From contig CM074807.1 of the NCBI GenBank assembly GCA_037447605.1, positions 558,001 through 622,000 of the forward strand: a stretch of 64,000 bases of DNA, read 5' to 3'. Position numbers and translations under genes: made by a program. Below the pieces are notes generated by a model that worked only from the letters and a program-made list of their open reading frames with translations, was not told where the DNA came from and did not search any database. The stretch's first letter is position 1. Each line of letters opens with the position of its first letter. This DNA comes from Zygnema circumcarinatum SAG 698-1b. Lineage: Eukaryota; Plantae; Zygnematophyceae. Positions 43,001 through 52,237 of this stretch are shown one piece after another.

Positions 43001-45793
43001 CTCCCCTGAACCCTCCCTCCCTGAACCCTCTCTCCCTCCCTCCCTCCCTCCCTNNNNNNNNNNGGGGGAGGGAGATGGAAGACGAAGAGACAGAGCGGGA
43101 GTGAGCGAAAAATAACGGGAAAGTGGGGAAGGGTGGGAGGAGATTGGATTTTGGGCTGGTTGAACTATGGGCTTGCGCTTTGGCTGTCCTGGAAGCTTTT
43201 TGTTGTGAATGAGTACCAAATTAGGGCTTTACAGTTTTCAGAACTTCAGAGAACGGCATACTTTAGAGGCCTCATATTGACGAGTTTCTGTTTCCCCTCT
43301 CGCATCTCCCCCTCCCTCCACTCCCCTCTCCCACTCCCTCTCCCTCTCCCTCTCTGTCTCCCTCACCCGCTTCCTCTCTCTCTCCCTCTCCTTTCGCCTC
43401 TCCCGATCCCACTCTCTCTCTCCCTCTCCCTCTCCCTCTCCCTCTCCNNNNNNNNNNCCCTCTCCCTCTCCCTCTCCCTCTCCCTCTCCCTCTCCCTCTC
43501 CCCCCTCTCCCTCTCCCTCTCCTCCCTCTCCCTCTCCCTCAGGTGGACGAGCGTGTGGAGGAGCTCCTCCCTCGCCTCACCCTCGAGGGTTTTGAGATGA
43601 GCTATGAGGAGGTTTTGGCGGCTGCGCAAGCCCCTGGTCAGCCCACAGTGGCGGAGTTGAGGGCGAGGGAGGAGGAGGAGAAGGAGGCTTTGAAGAGGAG
43701 GTTAAGGCAGGAAGCGGGAGAGGCGGGAGAGGGGAGGGAGGAGGAGGAGGAGGAGGAGGAGGAGGAGGAGATGATGGATGATGAGGAGGAGGGAGACTCC
43801 TCCATGTTGGCGAGGTTCATGCAGGAGACGGCGCAGCAGAAGAAGTTGCGGCAGTTCATGGTATTGTGAATGAAAAACCCTAAAATGGGAAGGTTGCAAA
43901 AGGGTTTCTGAACCCTACAAAGGGGAAGCCCTGAAGGTCACTATTGAAGTCATCGAATTGTCAGAGGAGAGCCCTAATCCATCTAAGCCCTAATGTTGAG
44001 TTCATTTCGCTTCCAAAGCCTCTCACTCTTTCGCTCTCATTTTTGCGGCACCCCTCTCCCCGCTCCCTCCCCTCCCTCTCCCTCCTTCCCCCTTCTTTCC
44101 CTTCCTTTCCCACTCTCCCTCCCTTCCCCCCCACTTCCCCTCTCCCTCTTCCTCTCCTCTCTCTTTCCCCCGTCTTCCCCTTCCCCTCCCTCCCCCCCCT
44201 CTTCCCCTCCCTCCCACTCCCTCTCTCCCTCCCCCCCCTCTTCCCCTCCCTCTCCCTCTCTCTCCCCCCTCTTCCCCTCCTCTCCCTCACCCTCCCGCCT
44301 CTTCCCCTCCTCTACCTCGTCCTCCCCCCCGTCTTCCCNNNNNNNNNNTCCCTCCCTCCCCCCCAGGAGCGCGAGGAGGAGAAGCTTGCCGCCGCCCGGC
44401 GCGTGGAGGACGACCCCCTCGCCTTCCCCATAGTGGACGATTCGCAGCCGCTCCTCCCGCAGCTCGCGCTCGAGGCGCTGCTCGACCTGCGCCACGCGTG
44501 GGCTCACACGTGGGAGCGCGCGCTCTCAGAGGCCGCGCCGGATCCGTACACGCCCGAGGCCGAACTCGACCTCGGGCTGCGAGTGCTGCGGGCGGTGGGC
44601 GCACAACCCTGAACCCTAATTGCTGAACTTGGAACTGCTCAACCCTGAACCCTGAAACCTAAACTTGAAGTCCTCAACCCTGAAGCCTAATTGCGAAACG
44701 TGAACTCCTCAACCCTGAAGCCTAATTGCTAAACTTGAACTGCGCGACCCTGAACCCTAATTGCTAAACTTGAACTGCTTAACCCTGAACCCTGATTGCT
44801 ACACTTGAAGTCCTCAACCCTGAACCCTAAGTCCTAAACTTGAACTCCTCAACCCTGAACCCTAATTCCTAAACTTGACGTCTGCAACCCTTAACCCTGA
44901 TTAACCAACTACGAACCCTAGACCCCAGACCGCAACCCGAAATCCTGGGCCCTATTTCGTCTTGGACCCTACGTTTTGAACTGCAAATGCGAAAGCCTGA
45001 ACCCTAAACCTCAAACTCGAAACCCTCAAAACTTACATCCGGACGCCGTAATCCTGAACCCTAAATCTTGAATGTTAAACCCTAAAAGTCTCGATTCCGA
45101 TACTGAACATGAACCCTCAAAGTCTTATACCCTGCAACCCTTTAAACCCCAAACCCTGAACCCTAATTCCTAAATCCTCAAACTTAATCCCTATACGCTC
45201 AATGCCTTGAAGGCCCCAAAGACAGAATCATTAGGGTTGTGGGAGGCACTTCTTTCCCCTCCCCCCCCTTTTTTTTTTTAACTTTTTTTCCCTTTTTGAG
45301 CAGGTGGTGAAGCTGGGCGGGAGGCCGAGTTTGGCGGACTGCGTGATGCTGATCCGGCGCGCCATGGAGGTGCAGCGGCCGGCAGCCATGGCCGAGCTGG
45401 TGGACATGTGTCACCTCCTCAAGCATCGCCTGCACATGTGAGTGGGGGAGGGAGGGAGGGAGGGAGGGAGTAGCGGGAGAGGGAGAAGCGGGAGAGGGAG
45501 AGGGATTGGAAGAAGGCGTTCGTCTCCTTTGCCCTTTCATTTTCCTTTCCTTTTCCTTATTTCATTTCGCTCTCTGTGTGTTCTTTCCTTGCAGAAATTT
45601 GTATGCCGATGTGGTCCGCGCGTGCATAGGGCTCGGCGCGGAGGAGGAGGCGGAGGCGGTGGTGGCGGCCATGGCGGGCGCGGGCGTGAAGGCGCCGGAG
45701 CCGCTCTTGCGGGCGCTGCAGACGCGCTCCCTCGACCCGGACATGGTGTGGGGGGAGGGGGAGGGAGAGGGAGAGGGAGGCGAGTCGGAGTGA
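34119..45793 (+). CDS. PTAC3: Plastid transcriptionally active chromosome protein 3 (PAP1) homolog; incomplete in this assembly
   Basis: Exons encode FTERLMERSRAKD...GLSAGPRLHHGVVVGHA, TTFHYNCLLRAQ, KPDVESYNWVLQ, FLGMMVEDYKRVQPNARTYALLVE, RTLVSSWMAP...IDFVARFVEDGG, TWERAL...ELDLGLRVL and VVKLGGRPSLADC, colinear with land-plant pTAC3. The transit peptide, one early exon and the SAP exon were not found; there are N gaps at 34109, 43034, 43448 and 44339. Confidence 0.85.
35213..35796. other. Duplicate of ~33525-34108 (offset 1688); probable misassembly
   Basis: Identical ORFs at 33818 and 35506. The first copy ends at an N gap and the second starts in a CT microsatellite. Confidence 0.65.
36470..38350. 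repeat. ~1.9-kb (CCCTGAA)n = (TTCAGGG)n telomere-variant satellite
   Basis: Long heptamer array with CTCCTGAA, CCCGGAA and CCCTGGACTCTGAA variants. It produces the spurious GFRVQGS ORFs. Confidence 0.92.
44610..44880. repeat. ~35-bp AACCCT-core minisatellite in a pTAC3 intron
   Basis: About 7-8 units like CTCAACCCTGAACCCTAATTGCTAAACTTGAACTC. Confidence 0.75.
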
Positions 45794-46658
45794 GAGAGGG
45801 GGAGAGGGGGAGAGAGAGAGAGAGCTAGAGAGAGTATCGCGGTTTAGGGTTGTAGCGGCTGCGAGGAAAAGGGCGGGAGAAGACCCGTTACGCGGATGGG
45901 AGAGACTTTTTGTTGGCAGAAAGGATTGGCGGTGGTTACCGAATCAAGTTTCTTTCTCTTTCATAGAATCCCTCTGTCATAGAAAACCTCAATCGTCCCT
46001 CAGAAAATCGAACAGGAGAGCCATGCTTGTGATTTGTAAGAGCGTTTGCGATTGGTTGAATATTCGTTACTTAAAATGCATGCAGTCCTCTTGGTGCTTC
46101 GTGCTTCATGTTTAATAATCTAACAGTCCAGCAGATTTACGAAAGACCGTAAAAAATCGAAGTTCTACCATGAATAGCGCATTGCATGAATTCTCACCAG
46201 TCCCACCATGAATAGTGCCTGTTCAATGGATACAACGTGAACCGATTTTCATAACATAAGCTACATTTTTTTTCTTTTTCTCAACGGACTTTCTGCATGC
46301 AAACAAAAAACTGCAGTTATTTCAGGGGAAAATATTTTTTCATTGCCGCCAGTGGTTTTTTAGTGACCGAGCATATCAGAGGTAATAACGAATCAAAGCA
46401 CCACAAGAAAAAAAAGACATGAATCACATGTGAAGGAAATGAGAAGGAAATTTTTGTTATTTCCCGAAAGATAACATGAATGCGTCATCACACAACTCTC
46501 AGTTTGGAGTGTATTCTGAAATTTCTACCAAAATTAGATCAATGTACATAAATTAACTGCAGGAGCTTGGGGCAGCCCTCCCTGCAGCAACCCTATCTTT
46601 CACTATCCCAACCAGCCTACTTCTACCTCCGCTCCTGGCAGATTTACAGACGACAAGC

Positions 46659-47396
46659 TTAACGGGGGGAGACGGTGATGTTAGCATCGGACTCCACCAA
46701 CTTGCCGTTCCTGAACTCGCTGACTGCAGCCAGGGGCCATGTGAAGCCCTTGGACATAATCTTCAAGGCGCGGGGAACGTCAATGATGATCTCCTTCTCA
46801 GTCGGCTTCTTCTCAGATCGCACGCTGATCAAGTACTCCCGGCCGACCCATCCAATCCAGCCGCTGATGTAGAGGAAGACGATGCCAGGGTACACGAACT
46901 CTCCAAGGTGAGCCTGGTCTCCGTCAACGATAAGGTGAGGGAGGCCGTCTGTGCCGCACAGAAGTCCCTGCTTGCCATAGTAAGCAAATCTCTTCTCGGT
47001 CTTCTCAATGGTCGCCTTCAAGGCGAGGGCGGGGGCACTGTCAGGCGCATACTGCTTCAGCCTGCTGTTAAGCTTCTTCACGGCCTGCTTCTCGCGCTTG
47101 GCGAACGCCTTGGAGTCCTTGCAGGGAGTCAGGCCGGCAACGTCGGCAAAGGCAGCCTCAGGAATGGAGGTGCTGACAATGGCTGCCAGAGCAAGAGCAG
47201 TGGCAACCTTGCCGGCCTTCATGGCAACATTCTCCTCCTTGTCAGCGGAGGCAGAGCACACAGTCCTGGCAGACACCTGCTTCACGAAGGCGGAAGCCTT
47301 GGTGGTGGAGAAGGACTGGCGAGACGAAACATCCTTGACTCCCACCACTGTGAGAGGGGAAGCGATCCCGGCCGCCATGGACACTGAAGCCGCCAT
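46659..47396 (-). CDS. psaF: Photosystem I subunit F precursor, intronless
   Basis: Bipartite transit peptide, then [19 protein letters not shown]...[16 protein letters not shown]...[16 protein letters not shown]...EIIIDVP...GFTWPLAA...ITVSPR. Confidence 0.98.
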
Positions 47397-48107
47397 TGCT
47401 CTGCTGCTTAGTCTCCTTAGATTCCTGCTTCTTCTTCTCCTTCAATTCCTGCTCTGAACTTTTCTGCAGACACTGCACGAAGACTGCTGGGGAGCCTTTC
47501 TCCTTTGTCTCCAAAAAATTTGGGGCTGCGAAGGGCTGCCGCCAACCGCAAAATTTGGAGCCGCGAAAATCCAGCCGATCACTCAGGCCAATCAGAGCGC
47601 AGAGCGAGAAATGCGGAGCCACTCGTGTGCGTCTGGATCGATAAGGTGCGGATCGGACGGTCCAGATTCGCCTGAATCGGAACTTTATCACTTTTTGCAC
47701 TTTCCGGATGCCCGCCACATCCGCCGCTTTAGCCGGCCGACAGGATTCGCCGGCGACTTTTCGACCGGCCGGGCGGCTCGCTCCCGACCGTCGATCGTGG
47801 GTGCGACAGATCGGATGGTTTACAATCTTCTGAATCTGGACGGCTGCCACGTGACACCAGTCGGAGGCCGCCAAGTAGTGCAAAGATAGATTGGACGCGC
47901 TCTGATTGGCCGACCAGGGATCGCCCGCCGCCCGTTGCCAAATCCTGCCGGCCGGCGGGGGGCCGGCCGGCCGGCTAAATCCTGAAGGGCCTTATCGGAG
48001 GGAGGTGGCCACCCCTAAGAGACGCTCCGCACCTCCTTGAAAGCCATCCCCTTTGAATCTTTCTTGCAAGAGCCTGAGCTTGAACCTGCAGCAGAATCAC
48101 AAGCCGT

Positions 48108-48138
<31 letters not shown>
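47397..48138. promoter_or_regulatory. Bidirectional psaF/psaD promoter
   Basis: 742 bp between the two ATGs. Perfect 15-bp inverted pair GGCCAATCAGAGCGC (47586-47600, 47897-47911), GATAAGG (47640) with its reverse complement CCTTATC (47990), and a central CACGTG (47848). Confidence 0.75.
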
Positions 48139-48738
48139 ATGGCCGCCATTGCCTCCACCGCAGCAGCTTGCGTCGCCGCCGCGGCGCCATCTTCTTCCCT
48201 CTCTCACAAGATCAGTGTGAGGAAGTTCGTGGCGGCGACTCCTCTGCGGCTGCAGGGAGTTGCCTCCACCTCCAGGGTGAGAATGGCGGCCGATGCTGCT
48301 GCCCCTGCAGGCTTCACCGCGCCGGAGCTGAAGGCCGACACTCCCTCCCCCATCTTCGGAGGCTCCACCGGAGGCCTGCTCCGCAAGGCTCAGGTCGAGG
48401 AGTTCTATGTCATCACATGGGAGGCCCCTAAGGAGCAGATCTTTGAGCTCCCTACCGGAGGAGCCGCCATCATGCGTGCAGGCCCTAACCTCTTGAAGCT
48501 CGCCAGGAAGGAGCAGTGCTTGGCTCTTGGAACGCAGTTGAGGAGCAAGTTCAAGATCAACTACCAGTTCTACCGCGTCTTCCCAAGCGGAGAGGTCCAG
48601 TACCTCCATCCCAAGGATGGTGTGTACCCCGAGAAGGTGAACGCTGGACGCACAGGTGTCAACCAAAACTTCAGATCTATTGGAAAGAACCTGAACCCCG
48701 TTGAGGTCAAGTTCACCGGAAAGTTGACCATCCAGTAA
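48139..48738 (+). CDS. psaD: Photosystem I subunit D precursor, intronless
   Basis: Transit peptide, then [26 protein letters not shown]...[31 protein letters not shown]...[17 protein letters not shown]. Confidence 0.98.
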
Positions 48739-48765
48739 GCAGAGAGCAGGCTTAACTTGTTCAAA

Positions 48766-49695
48766 CAAGGGCTTCACATGATCCCTGGCTGCAGTTAGCG
48801 AGTACAGGAACGGCAAGTTGGAGTCCGATGCTAACATCGCTGTTCCCTCCCGTTACGCTTGTCTTCTCTGTAAATCTGCCAGGAGCGGAGGTAGAAATAG
48901 GCTGGCTGGGATAGTGATAGATAGGCCTCCTGCCCCAAGCTCCTGCAGTTTATTTATGTACATTGATCTAATTTTGGTAGAAACTTCAGGATACACTCCA
49001 AACTGTGAGCTGTGTGATGACACATTCATGTTATCTCTGGGAAATAACAAACATTTCCTACTCATTTCCTTCGCATGCGATTGTCGTTTTTTTCCTTGGT
49101 GCTCTGATTCCTTTTTGCCTCTGATGTGCTCGGTGCCTTGGAAAAGGTCACAAAAGAACCACTGGCGCCATTGGAAACTTTTCCGATGAGATTACTTAAT
49201 TATTTGCTTGCAGTACTTTCCCATTGAGAATAAGAAAACAGAAAGGTGGCTCGTTAGTGGCCATGTCACAGAAATTCTCAGGTTATGTTATATCCATTGA
49301 GCAGGCCCTATGCATGGTGGGACTTGAATGTATGGCAATGTGTATCTTAACTTGAAGCGCGAATTAAAGACGTCGAACCCAATGCGATGATAAGTAACAA
49401 ATATTCAAACAATCGCAAACGCTCTTACAGGACACAAGCATCCCTTCTGTTCGAACTTCTGTTGTGATGATTGAGGTGTTCTTTGACGGAGGGAACGTAT
49501 GATAACGAAAGAAACACGAGTTGGTAACCACCGGCAATCTTGTTTACCAAAAAAAGGCCCTCCCGCCCTCTCAGGAACGGATCGCCCCCCACCCTCCTCG
49601 CGACCGCTACTAAACCAAGCCGCGACAACCTCTCTCGCCCTCTCTCTCACTCCGACCCGCTGCCCTCCCCCTCGCCCTCCCCCGACACCATGTCC
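48766..49695 (+). pseudogene. Inverted duplicate of ~45740-46752: pseudo-psaF 3' end, its 3' UTR, intergenic DNA and the pTAC3 tail
   Basis: CAAGGGCTTCACATGATCCCTGGCTGCAG... matches psa[10 protein letters not shown] with TGG>TGA, a 3-nt deletion and TAA>TAC. Similarity continues to ACACCATGTCCG, the antisense of the pTAC3 last codons. Confidence 0.92.
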
Positions 49696-50640
49696 GAGGG
49701 AGGGAGGGAAAGAGGGAGGGAGGGAGGGAGGGAGGGAGGGACAGCCCGCCTTACGGCCGGGGCACATAGTGCGCGGAGCACCATGGTGGTTTTAGCACCC
49801 GCTACAATCGCAGCAGGGGGGGATTAAGTGGAAAACAGTGTGTACATATTCATGTGCTAAAGCATTTGAAAATGATATCTCATGTGATGTTGAGCATGTA
49901 ATAGATGTGATATTGGTGATGATTATATGGTGTTCTGAAAAAACGCAACGAAGTGATTGCCTTGTTCAATCTGCTCGCCCGCCTCTCGGAATCCATCAAG
50001 ACGGTCTCCGAGCTTATGACAAGTCTGAACACCTCCCCAGAAAGAGAGCGGAGCTCCTCTCCCTCCTCTCCCTCCTCTCCCTCTCTCTCCCGCTCCAACT
50101 CCAGTCCCAGCAACCTCCTTAGCGCCCTCCTTCCCTCTTGAAGCGGGAAGAGAAAAACATTTAGCAACCACCGATGGTTGGGCCATTGTCGCTCACAATG
50201 GAGGAGTCAACCCTAAATCCTAAACCCGAAACCCGAAACCCTAAACCAAACCCTGAAGAATGTATGTGGAATTAAGTCATTTACATTTGCATTGTAGAAA
50301 TGAGTACCAGCAATCACTGTTTTTGATTCTCGAATATAGTTCGAGTAAACTTATTACATCTAACAGTTGAAATTGATTTCTGAAAAGAAACATAATAATT
50401 CTTATTGCGACACCTACACAGATAATAGCCTGTTAAATCCCTCGGACAGATATTCACCTTAGGTGTGTTTACCAAGAAAAGAAAAAAAAAAAAAAACGTT
50501 TCTCGGGTCTAATATTTCAAACTGAACCATAGAGACACCAGAGAAACCAGAGAGAGTTCAAGGCCCTTTAAGATTTCAAACTTCCGAAAGTTCAAACCGT
50601 CAGCCTTCAGGGTTTTGGAGTTTGAATGTTCCAACGACTT

Positions 50641-50922
50641 CCAAGGGTTCAAGACTTCTTCTTCTTCGTCCAAGGGTTCAAGACTTCTTCTTCTTCGTCC
50701 AAGGGTTCAAGACTTCTTCTTCTTCTTCCAAGGGTTCAAGACTTCTTCTTCTTCGTCCAAGGGTTCAAGACTTCTTCTTCTTCTTCCAAGGGTTCAAGAC
50801 TTCTTCTTCTTCTTCCAAGGGTTCAAGACTTCTTCTTCTTCTTCCAAAGGTTCAAGACTTCTTCTTCTTCTCTTCCGAGGGTTCAAGACTTCTTCTTCTT
50901 CTTCTTCTTCCAAGGGTTCAAG
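50641..50922. repeat. 29-bp minisatellite (CCAAGGGTTCAAGACTTCTTCTTCTTCGT), ~9.5 units, overlapping the dehydrogenase stop codon
   Basis: Units start at 50641, 50670, 50699, 50728, 50757, 50786, 50815, 50844, 50875 and 50910. Confidence 0.92.
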
Positions 50923-51401
50923 GCTTTCCATTTTCAACGTTGTTCGCCAACTCCACCAAGGTGAGGGTCTCGCCATTCTTCACTTGCCGAATAGTCGCCG
51001 CCATCACCTGCAAAAGCCGCCGCCCATAAAACAGACTTTCAGATTTCAGATTGTTCCCAGCAAAACAGTATTCAATGTTTACGGATGAAAGTGATGTGCA
51101 GTGGGGCCACCCCTTCTCCCTCGTTCCTTCCCACTCACCACCTCGAAAAGTGAGACAGAAGGAGAGCAAGAGAGAGAGGGTGAGAGAGATGGGGGGGTGA
51201 GAGAGAGAGCAAAAGAAAGAGCAAGAGAGAAGGAGAGGGGGAGAGAGAGAAAGAGAGGGGGAGAAAAAGAGAGCAAAGAAGCGAGATAGAGCAATAGAGA
51301 GAGGGAGCATAAGAGATAGAGAGATAGAAATAGAGAGAAAACAAAGGCGAGAGGGAGCAATAGAGAGAGAACAAAGGGGAGAGAAAGCAAAGGAGAAAGA
51401 G

Positions 51402-51440
<39 letters not shown>

Positions 51441-52237
51441 AACTGACTCGCGCCATGGTTTCATAGGACGGCTTCGTGACGCCTCCCACGTGCGGAGTGA
51501 TGATGACCCGCGGATGTGTCGCGATCGCATCCGTCGGATCGAACGGCTCCTGCCACGCCACGTCAGCCGCGAGCCCCCCCAGCCGCCCCCCCTCCAGGGC
51601 CGCCCACGTGGCCGAATAGTCCAAAAGGCCGCCCCGCGCAATGTTCACCAAAAGGGCCCCCTGCGAGCCGGCCCAGAATGGAAATATTTTTTTTAGGGAC
51701 AGATTTTAGGGTTTTAGATTGTAGGGGTTTTAGGGTTTGGGGAAAACATGGGCGATTCATCATCATCAGCAGAGGAAATGGTGAAAAGGAAAAAGTGAAA
51801 AGTTGAAAAGGGGGGTATGTAATGATGATGGGAAGGCATGGGCATACCTTTTTCATGGAGCCGTAAAACTCGGCGTTGGCCATGCCCGCCTGCATGCATG
51901 GATGGATGTATGGATGTATGTATGTATGTGTCCCCCATGGATGGCATCATCATGCCATGGATCCATCCATCCATCCCCATGAGTTGCTTCCCAGAAGCTT
52001 CCATCGCACTAAAGCTGCTCCACAGTGTTCATGCAACGGACTGATGGAGCGGGATTCGCAGCAAACATCAGGGAGCGAGAGAGAGAGAGAGAGAGAGGGA
52101 GGGGGAGAGAGAGGGGTAGAGAGATGGGGCGAGAGAGATAGAGAAAGAGAGAGGGAAAGAGAGAGAGAGAGGGTGAGGGAGAGAGAGAAAGGGTGAGGGA
52201 GAGAGAGAGAGGGAGAGCGAGAGAGGGGGAGCGAGAT

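Follow-up and report, generated by a model that had tools for sequence, protein, structure and literature searches.

That partial duplications can give rise to chimeric transcripts is well established, and inverted pairs of paralogues with a shared bidirectional promoter and similar 3' ends occur as well, such as the light-harvesting gene pairs of Nannochloropsis and the divergent histone pairs of green algae. Here we analyse a stretch of 64,000 nucleotides from Zygnema circumcarinatum SAG 698-1b (GenBank assembly GCA_037447605.1, contig CM074807.1, positions 558,001 to 622,000 of the forward strand; hereafter the window, to which all coordinates refer), in which psaF and psaD, two unrelated nuclear genes for subunits of photosystem I (PSI), stand head to head between the arms of an inverted repeat of about 1 kb. 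Our analyses make it probable that an inverted partial duplication gave psaD a 3' untranslated region (UTR) derived from psaF, probably including the polyadenylation (poly(A)) region, and that the part of the duplicate needed by both genes has been kept alike.

As in other chimeric genes and cases of UTR capture by partial duplication, a gene fragment was copied beside another gene, it decayed as coding sequence, and it is reused as non-coding transcript. Unlike in the usual case, the copy is inverted and supplies a 3' UTR and probably a terminator; the gene that gave it and the gene that received it are divergent neighbours whose products belong to one complex as two of its subunits, and together they form a symmetric cassette. 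The locus shares with the paralogue pairs a single promoter region, divergent transcription and similar 3' ends on both sides, but in those pairs whole genes have been duplicated or a 3' motif is shared across a family, whereas here only the 3' end has been duplicated, and onto an unrelated gene. In Chlamydomonas, vectors are built with the PSAD promoter and terminator, and the psaD-psaF locus resembles engineered bidirectional cassettes with matched terminators (one promoter region, two open reading frames, the same 3' end), although it is natural and evolved, and its status as a functional unit is putative.

The HLI retrogenes of Paulinella offer another comparison, as these are divergent, intronless pairs of photosynthesis-related nuclear genes with a putative bidirectional promoter containing quasi-palindromic elements, and with mirrored flanking repeats (PMC9191642). 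The paired HLI genes are homologous to each other, have been multiplied many times, and are accompanied by genomic poly(A) and homopyrimidine tracts that were taken as marks of retrotransposition (PMC9191642). Divergent intronless photosynthesis genes with mirrored flanks are also what we observe in Zygnema, yet the two Zygnema genes are unrelated to each other, their locus occurs once in the window, and the flanks are formed by a copy of the partner's own 3' end. Assignment to a retrogene pair of this type was rejected: inspection of the sequence found no genomic poly(A) tract or other A-run after either psaD or psaF, and the corresponding genes of relatives are intronless, while GA/CT-rich microsatellites do stand at the outer ends of the arms. 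Assignment to a foldback transposon with terminal inverted repeats (TIRs) was likewise rejected, given the lack of a target-site duplication and of any further copy in the window, and given that the arms consist of the ends of host genes. Our literature search found no paper describing a nuclear psaD-psaF pair.

How nuclear genomes balance photosystem subunits without operons is an open question on which this locus bears. In this natural system, unrelated genes for two PSI subunits have a promoter region in common and end in almost the same 3' UTR, with transcript data showing the borrowed end in use, and the locus presents a clean setting for measuring the contribution of 3' ends to matched expression. 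Additionally, it illustrates clearly how a coding fragment, once decayed, can be reused as UTR, and it supplies compact promoter and terminator parts for streptophyte-algal expression tools.

A psaF-derived 3' end behind psaD

Both psaF and psaD consist of one single open reading frame, and together they form a 2-kb core enclosed by the two arms. The exact PsaD and PsaF proteins are not on record, the organism's own proteins being absent from the databases searched, and the best full-length matches are zygnematophycean (Mesotaenium endlicherianum, with 75-76% identity for PsaD and 72% for PsaF, and Closterium, with 74% and 69%). The features on which the argument depends are as follows (CDS, coding sequence).

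46659-47396, minus strand: psaF CDS, intronless, 245 amino acids (Pfam PSI_PsaF, E = 4e-81; RNA depth 5,000-23,000)
48139-48738, plus strand: psaD CDS, intronless, 199 amino acids plus stop, the stop at 48736-48738 (Pfam PsaD, E = 2e-67; RNA depth 4,000-20,000)
48739-48765, plus strand: psaD-specific 3' sequence ahead of the arm, 27 nt
45738-46752, no strand: left arm, source copy, holding the tail and 3' UTR of the convergent gene pTAC3, intergenic DNA, the psaF 3' UTR and the final 94 nt of the psaF CDS
48766-49696, no strand: right arm, derived inverted copy (repeat finder, MAFFT, blastn)
48766-48857, plus strand: decayed copy of the last 31 psaF codons, now within the psaD 3' UTR (codon-level comparison)
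46421-46752, no strand: high-identity zone of the left arm (90.8%), with its right-arm partner at 48766 to ~49082
46521-46658, minus strand: psaF 3' UTR, its distal end approximate and placed by the fall in RNA depth
48739-48984, plus strand: psaD 3' UTR as transcribed, its distal end approximate (48955-48985) and placed by the fall in RNA depth

The first-pass annotation, made from the sequence by eye, had placed the arms at 45740-46752 and 48766-49695, and a repeat finder, MAFFT and blastn agree with it almost to the nucleotide (~45738-46752 and 48766 to ~49696). Alignment of 45700-46800 with the reverse complement of 48720-49760 in MAFFT gave a mean column identity of 82%, and in blastn each arm found its partner, in inverted orientation and with a likeness far above chance (E = 5e-134 over the inner 588 bp). 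When each arm was searched with blastn against the whole window, its partner was the only match and no further copy was found, so the arms do not belong to a repeat that is dispersed within the window. No target-site duplication was detected at the arms by sequence inspection. The outer boundary is blurred on both sides by (GGGA)n microsatellites.

The right arm opens exactly 27 nt past the psaD stop codon, as had been proposed, and begins with the end of the psaF reading frame. Read in frame, the copy gives KGFT*SLAAVSEYRNGKL-ESDANIAVPSRY against the psaF tail, and codon-level comparison recovered all three of the lesions that had been read by eye: a TGG-to-TGA change creating an in-frame stop, a deletion of 3 nt that removes one codon, and a TAA-to-TAC change that abolishes the stop. 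The copy is thus degenerate, whereas its counterpart lies within the intact psaF reading frame, and for this reason we take the left arm as the source and the right arm as the copy. An intact source facing a degenerate second copy is the pattern of a partial gene duplication.

Transcription across the junction

We examined 45200-50500 with the RNA contigs of four runs made on this organism in two studies (2019 and 2024). That these runs represent RNA follows from the zero depth over the promoter and from a pTAC3 contig that lacks the intron. In contigs of the four runs and both studies the junction at 48766 is crossed at the depth of the CDS and with no differing letters. For example, single contigs extend from within the psaD CDS across the junction to 48896 in run X4 (from 48147, depth 4298) and run X1 (from 48315, depth 9486), both without mismatches, and in run X3 the junction contig (48661-48896) has a depth of 9204 compared with 7786 for the contig of the CDS. 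Because independent contigs from both studies cross the junction without mismatch, it is not an artefact of assembly; moreover, since full-depth contigs run to 48896, psaD is not polyadenylated ahead of the arm, and the psaF-derived fragment is part of the mature psaD transcript. Neither inverted-core joints nor variant letters were found in the RNA contigs, though such contigs drop rare forms.

Past 48896, the signal in the bin 48917-49093 amounts to ~40-65 nt at full depth, and the contigs from 48952-48954 onward have a depth of only 146-299. The depth of psaD thus falls ~30-60-fold near 48955-48985, a position homologous to that of the fall in psaF, where the pattern is mirrored: high depth extends to 46621 and is followed by a partial bin and by low-depth contigs ending at 46551-46553, the depth dropping from ~10^4 to 170-260 past ~46550. 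From these depths we infer that psaD ends at about 48955-48985 and psaF at about 46521-46565, two positions homologous to each other within ~30 nt. Consequently the psaD 3' UTR, its distal end being the depth-inferred one, measures ~220-245 nt, comprising 27 nt of its own, 92 nt of former psaF codons, and former psaF 3' UTR for the rest. A UGUAA motif at 48869-48873 was considered as the sole poly(A) signal and ruled out, as full depth continues well past it. The proposal that the two mRNAs carry nearly the same 3' UTR and poly(A) signals is hence upheld for the UTR, through the contigs to 48896, while for the poly(A) signals the evidence is the homologous fall in depth.

In run X2, one contig (45838-46553, depth 168) extends from the 3' UTR of pTAC3 to the psaF 3' end. 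It represents read-through of one of the two convergent genes; the contig is strandless, and overlapping antisense RNA is possible.

Relatives

Whether related species carry the same arrangement was assessed at 83 psaD loci, among them those of Closterium NIES-67 (10 kb upstream) and of the closest available relative (81% amino acid identity) as well as 80 metagenome loci, with at least 1.5 kb of upstream sequence in 47 and at least 500 nt of downstream sequence in 73. Neither psaF nor a psaF tail lies beside psaD at any of the 83, from which we conclude that both the pairing and the duplication are lineage-specific. In two psaF loci of relatives (L004 and L005), the gene reaches the end of its contig and the upstream DNA is too short for a verdict. 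In the relatives examined, psaD and psaF each align as a single high-scoring segment pair (HSP) and are thus intronless. Intronlessness is therefore ancestral and gives no evidence of retroposition.

Divergence along the arms

Identity between the arms is far from even. The inner zone (46421-46752 in the left arm) has 287 matches and 29 mismatches (90.8%; Jukes-Cantor K = 0.10), whereas the outer zone (45738-46420) has 427 matches and 154 mismatches (73.5%; K = 0.33) along with many indels, a difference that is highly significant (Fisher p = 1.5e-10). In steps of 50 columns from the inner edge, identity runs 0.92, 0.87, 0.94, 0.89, 0.94 and 0.92, then 0.79, 0.87, 0.80 and 0.77, and further out it ranges between 0.45 and 0.86 with many indels. 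The estimates made by eye, of ~90% over ~320 bp and 70-75% beyond, are thus close to the computed values for the inner ~330 bp and the outer remainder, and a uniform, neutral identity across the arms, which the first-pass annotation had named as the outcome that would count against its reading, is rejected by the step profile and its associated p-value. Given the degree to which the outer arms have diverged, the duplication must be old. Within the inner zone the formerly coding part is 89% identical and the UTR proper 93%, and the zone as a whole reaches ~65-100 nt past the inferred 3' ends.

We propose the following origin for the locus. A lineage-specific inverted segmental duplication would have copied ~1 kb from the 3' end of the psaF locus, including the last 31 psaF codons, the psaF 3' UTR, intergenic DNA and, from the convergent pTAC3/PAP1 gene, its final codons together with its 3' UTR. 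The copy would have landed 27 nt past the stop codon of psaD, itself head to head with psaF across a promoter region of ~0.6 kb, and the duplicated psaF poly(A) signals would now terminate psaD. Subsequently, identity would have remained at ~91% over the transcribed part and ~65-100 nt beyond it, whereas that of the untranscribed remainder would have fallen to ~73%. The likeness of the inner zone would then reflect the need of both copies to retain working signals for 3'-end formation and UTR function, with a possible contribution from old gene conversion. The outcome would be a natural cassette in which two genes have one bidirectional promoter between them and close with near-identical 3' ends.

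Several observations weigh against this reading. The longest block identical in both arms measures 32 nt, compared with ~35 nt expected at 91% identity over 316 nt, and so is by itself no sign of constraint. Neither of the two UTRs has an unusual fold (z = -0.3), and no Rfam family matched the shared UTR. The RNA contigs reported no poly(A) junctions or poly(A) loose ends, and the 3' end is placed by depth only, at a resolution of ~30 nt. We had considered the contig ends at 48896/46621 and 48952/46553 as poly(A) sites, and rejected them as they coincide with blocks that are identical in both arms (46621-46647 = 48870-48896, of 27 nt in the MAFFT alignment, and 46522-46553 = 48952-48983, of 32 nt); the shorter block grows to 30 nt under another placement of the gap, on our reading of the codon-level comparison. 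With an assembler word length that we assumed to be 31, such blocks would split the assembly graph, and these contig ends are assembly breaks. The contigs are also strandless, and the low-depth signal past the fall could be read-through or antisense. Finally, the closest relatives compared share 81% (PsaD) and 77% (PsaF) amino acid identity and include no sister species, which bears on the choice between selection and conversion.

The strongest competitor is that the capture was neutral and was followed by concerted evolution, one or more gene conversions between the arms, rather than constraint, having produced the inner identity, and the shared UTR having no co-regulatory meaning. We regard this as a possibility to be taken seriously, though clearly the less probable of the two. 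The step-like profile, at ~0.9 over the first 300 bp and then at 0.8 and lower, is what a tract reset at a later date would leave, and the formerly coding part, which has no obvious role in psaD, is nonetheless nearly as well preserved as the UTR proper. However, there is no long identical tract (the 32 nt observed being as expected for a uniform divergence of 9%), such that any conversion must be old. Moreover, the high-identity zone stops ~65-100 nt past the inferred 3' end, where the downstream elements of a poly(A) site would end, and psaF would be damaged by any conversion in which the right arm served as donor.

The probable shared promoter region

The start codons of psaF and psaD are separated by 742 nt (less than ~1 kb apart), with the genes divergent and no gene between them. 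The features of this region are:

47501-48100, no strand: shared promoter region, untranscribed save for traces in the four RNA runs
47586-47600, minus strand: 15-nt element GCGCTCTGATTGGCC, copy facing psaF, one of a perfect inverted pair with a CCAAT box
47897-47911, plus strand: 15-nt element GCGCTCTGATTGGCC, copy facing psaD, the other of the pair, with a CCAAT box

In all four runs, RNA depth is zero between 47501 and 47677 and does not exceed 2-3 from there to 48031; the psaF contigs extend to 47500 and the psaD contigs begin at or before ~48109. A segment that is untranscribed at 47501-47677, with mere traces from there up to psaD, fits a bidirectional promoter, the sharing of a promoter having been suggested for the pair. 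In two runs, RNA contigs of depth 2-3 lie at 47741-48037, and these may be upstream or antisense promoter transcripts.

The two copies of GCGCTCTGATTGGCC stand 190 nt (psaF) and 228 nt (psaD) upstream of the start codons, in the same orientation toward each gene, and a search of the window that allowed up to 2 mismatches gave these two matches and no others (0.1 expected). The local-alignment score of the two promoter halves exceeds that of all 300 shuffles. In relatives, too, psaD and psaF have CCAAT boxes upstream, and the element is therefore a plausible candidate for a shared cis-element. A palindromic promoter was rejected, as the halves cannot be aligned beyond the 15-mer.

A cassette of this kind would tend to co-regulate two subunits that are needed 1:1. 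Matching of stoichiometry as an adaptation is an attractive idea, for which the sole hint is that the psaD/psaF ratio of contig depths is ~0.87-1.1 in the four runs, an agreement to within ~15% in a quantity that the tool itself describes as a poor measure of expression, and in runs that do not include varied conditions. The strongest form of this idea would be a selected co-expression module, in which a bidirectional promoter with mirrored CCAAT elements drives both genes and the same RNA-binding factors or small RNAs recognise both of the near-identical 3' UTRs; we consider this unlikely on present evidence. Were it true, the PsaD and PsaF mRNAs would be made, stabilised and degraded in lock-step, and the locus would stand in for an operon in a eukaryotic nucleus, having arisen through duplication of a terminator and not of a gene.

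A palindromic origin would account for the mirrored element differently. Under this explanation the whole of psaF and half of the promoter were duplicated as a palindrome, after which psaD, inserted perhaps as an intronless copy, took the place of most of the second psaF while retaining the latter's promoter and terminator. The perfect 15-nt element containing CCAAT, mirrored at 190 and 228 nt from the start codons, is compatible with such a history, as are the intronless state of both genes and the position of the breakpoint inside the psaF CDS. Yet the promoter halves and 5' UTRs cannot be aligned beyond the 15-mer even though the neutral outer arms are still 73% alike, the lack of introns is ancestral (the psaD and psaF of relatives being single HSPs), and no genomic poly(A) tract follows psaD. 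We thus hold a palindromic origin to be very improbable. Least credible of all, and dismissed here, is that the arms are the TIRs of a foldback or other DNA transposon or else an assembly artefact, as although they are bounded by simple repeats and runs of N occur elsewhere in the window, they consist of recognisable host gene ends (psaF and pTAC3), the left arm belongs to two functional genes, no other copy in the window and no target-site duplication accompany them, and RNA contigs from the 2019 and 2024 studies cross the inner junction without mismatch.

Neighbouring genes and repeats

A multi-exon gene on the plus strand converges on psaF. Searches of its exons against a protein atlas and Pfam were uninformative, and a sequence search of the PDB settled its identity, with collinear matches to the PAP1/pTAC3 chains of plastid RNA polymerase complexes: the exon at 39150-39413 matches residues 178-256 (E = 1e-13), that at 41997-42200 matches residues 381-437 (E = 3e-10), and for the tail exon there is a weak match to residues 838-882 of 892 (E = 0.15). 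The identification of this neighbour as pTAC3, and the presence of its tail in antisense in the arm, had both been claimed at the outset; the former holds, and the latter is narrowed, as only the last ~55 nt of the CDS, a low-complexity Gly/Glu tail, lie inside the arm. The corresponding features are:

45595-45793, plus strand: last exon of convergent pTAC3/PAP1, with its TGA stop at 45791-45793, its last ~55 nt in the left arm, and an RNA splice from 45434 to 45595
49640-49696, minus strand: decayed antisense copy of the codons of the pTAC3 tail, stop included (MAFFT columns 60-140 and sequence)

Within the otherwise ~70% identical outer arms there is an island of 51 nt with 90% identity (46023-46073 and 49391-49441). 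Its left-arm copy falls within the 3' UTR of pTAC3, whose RNA contigs end ~60-110 nt further on (46131-46132). The island contains TGTAA and may be the poly(A) signal region of pTAC3.

On the other side of the cassette, the right neighbour is a gene on the minus strand resembling D-2-hydroxyacid dehydrogenases (Pfam 2-Hacid_dh_C, E = 1e-13, on 51079-51651). The contigs of its apparent 3' UTR (50117-50468) lie at least ~420 nt outside the arm. A tandem repeat of a 29-nt unit, in about 12 copies that are up to 99% alike, occupies 50582-50928 in this same apparent 3' UTR.

Simple repeats are frequent around the locus. (GGGA)n or GA-rich microsatellites occur at 45444-45500, 45750-45830 and 49696-49742, that is, at both outer arm ends and in a pTAC3 intron, and weak, sub-threshold miRNA-like matches in Rfam at 49633-49734 correspond to a hairpin of CCCT/GGGA simple repeats. 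The second-to-last intron of pTAC3 contains a 35-nt satellite of telomere-like CCCTGAA/CCCTAAA units (44597-45200), to which a short stretch at 50198-50245 is related. Short runs of N, at ~43100, ~43450 and ~44330, which appear as X in the translated ORFs, fall in simple-repeat stretches of the pTAC3 introns and represent assembly gaps near, and not in, the psaD-psaF locus.

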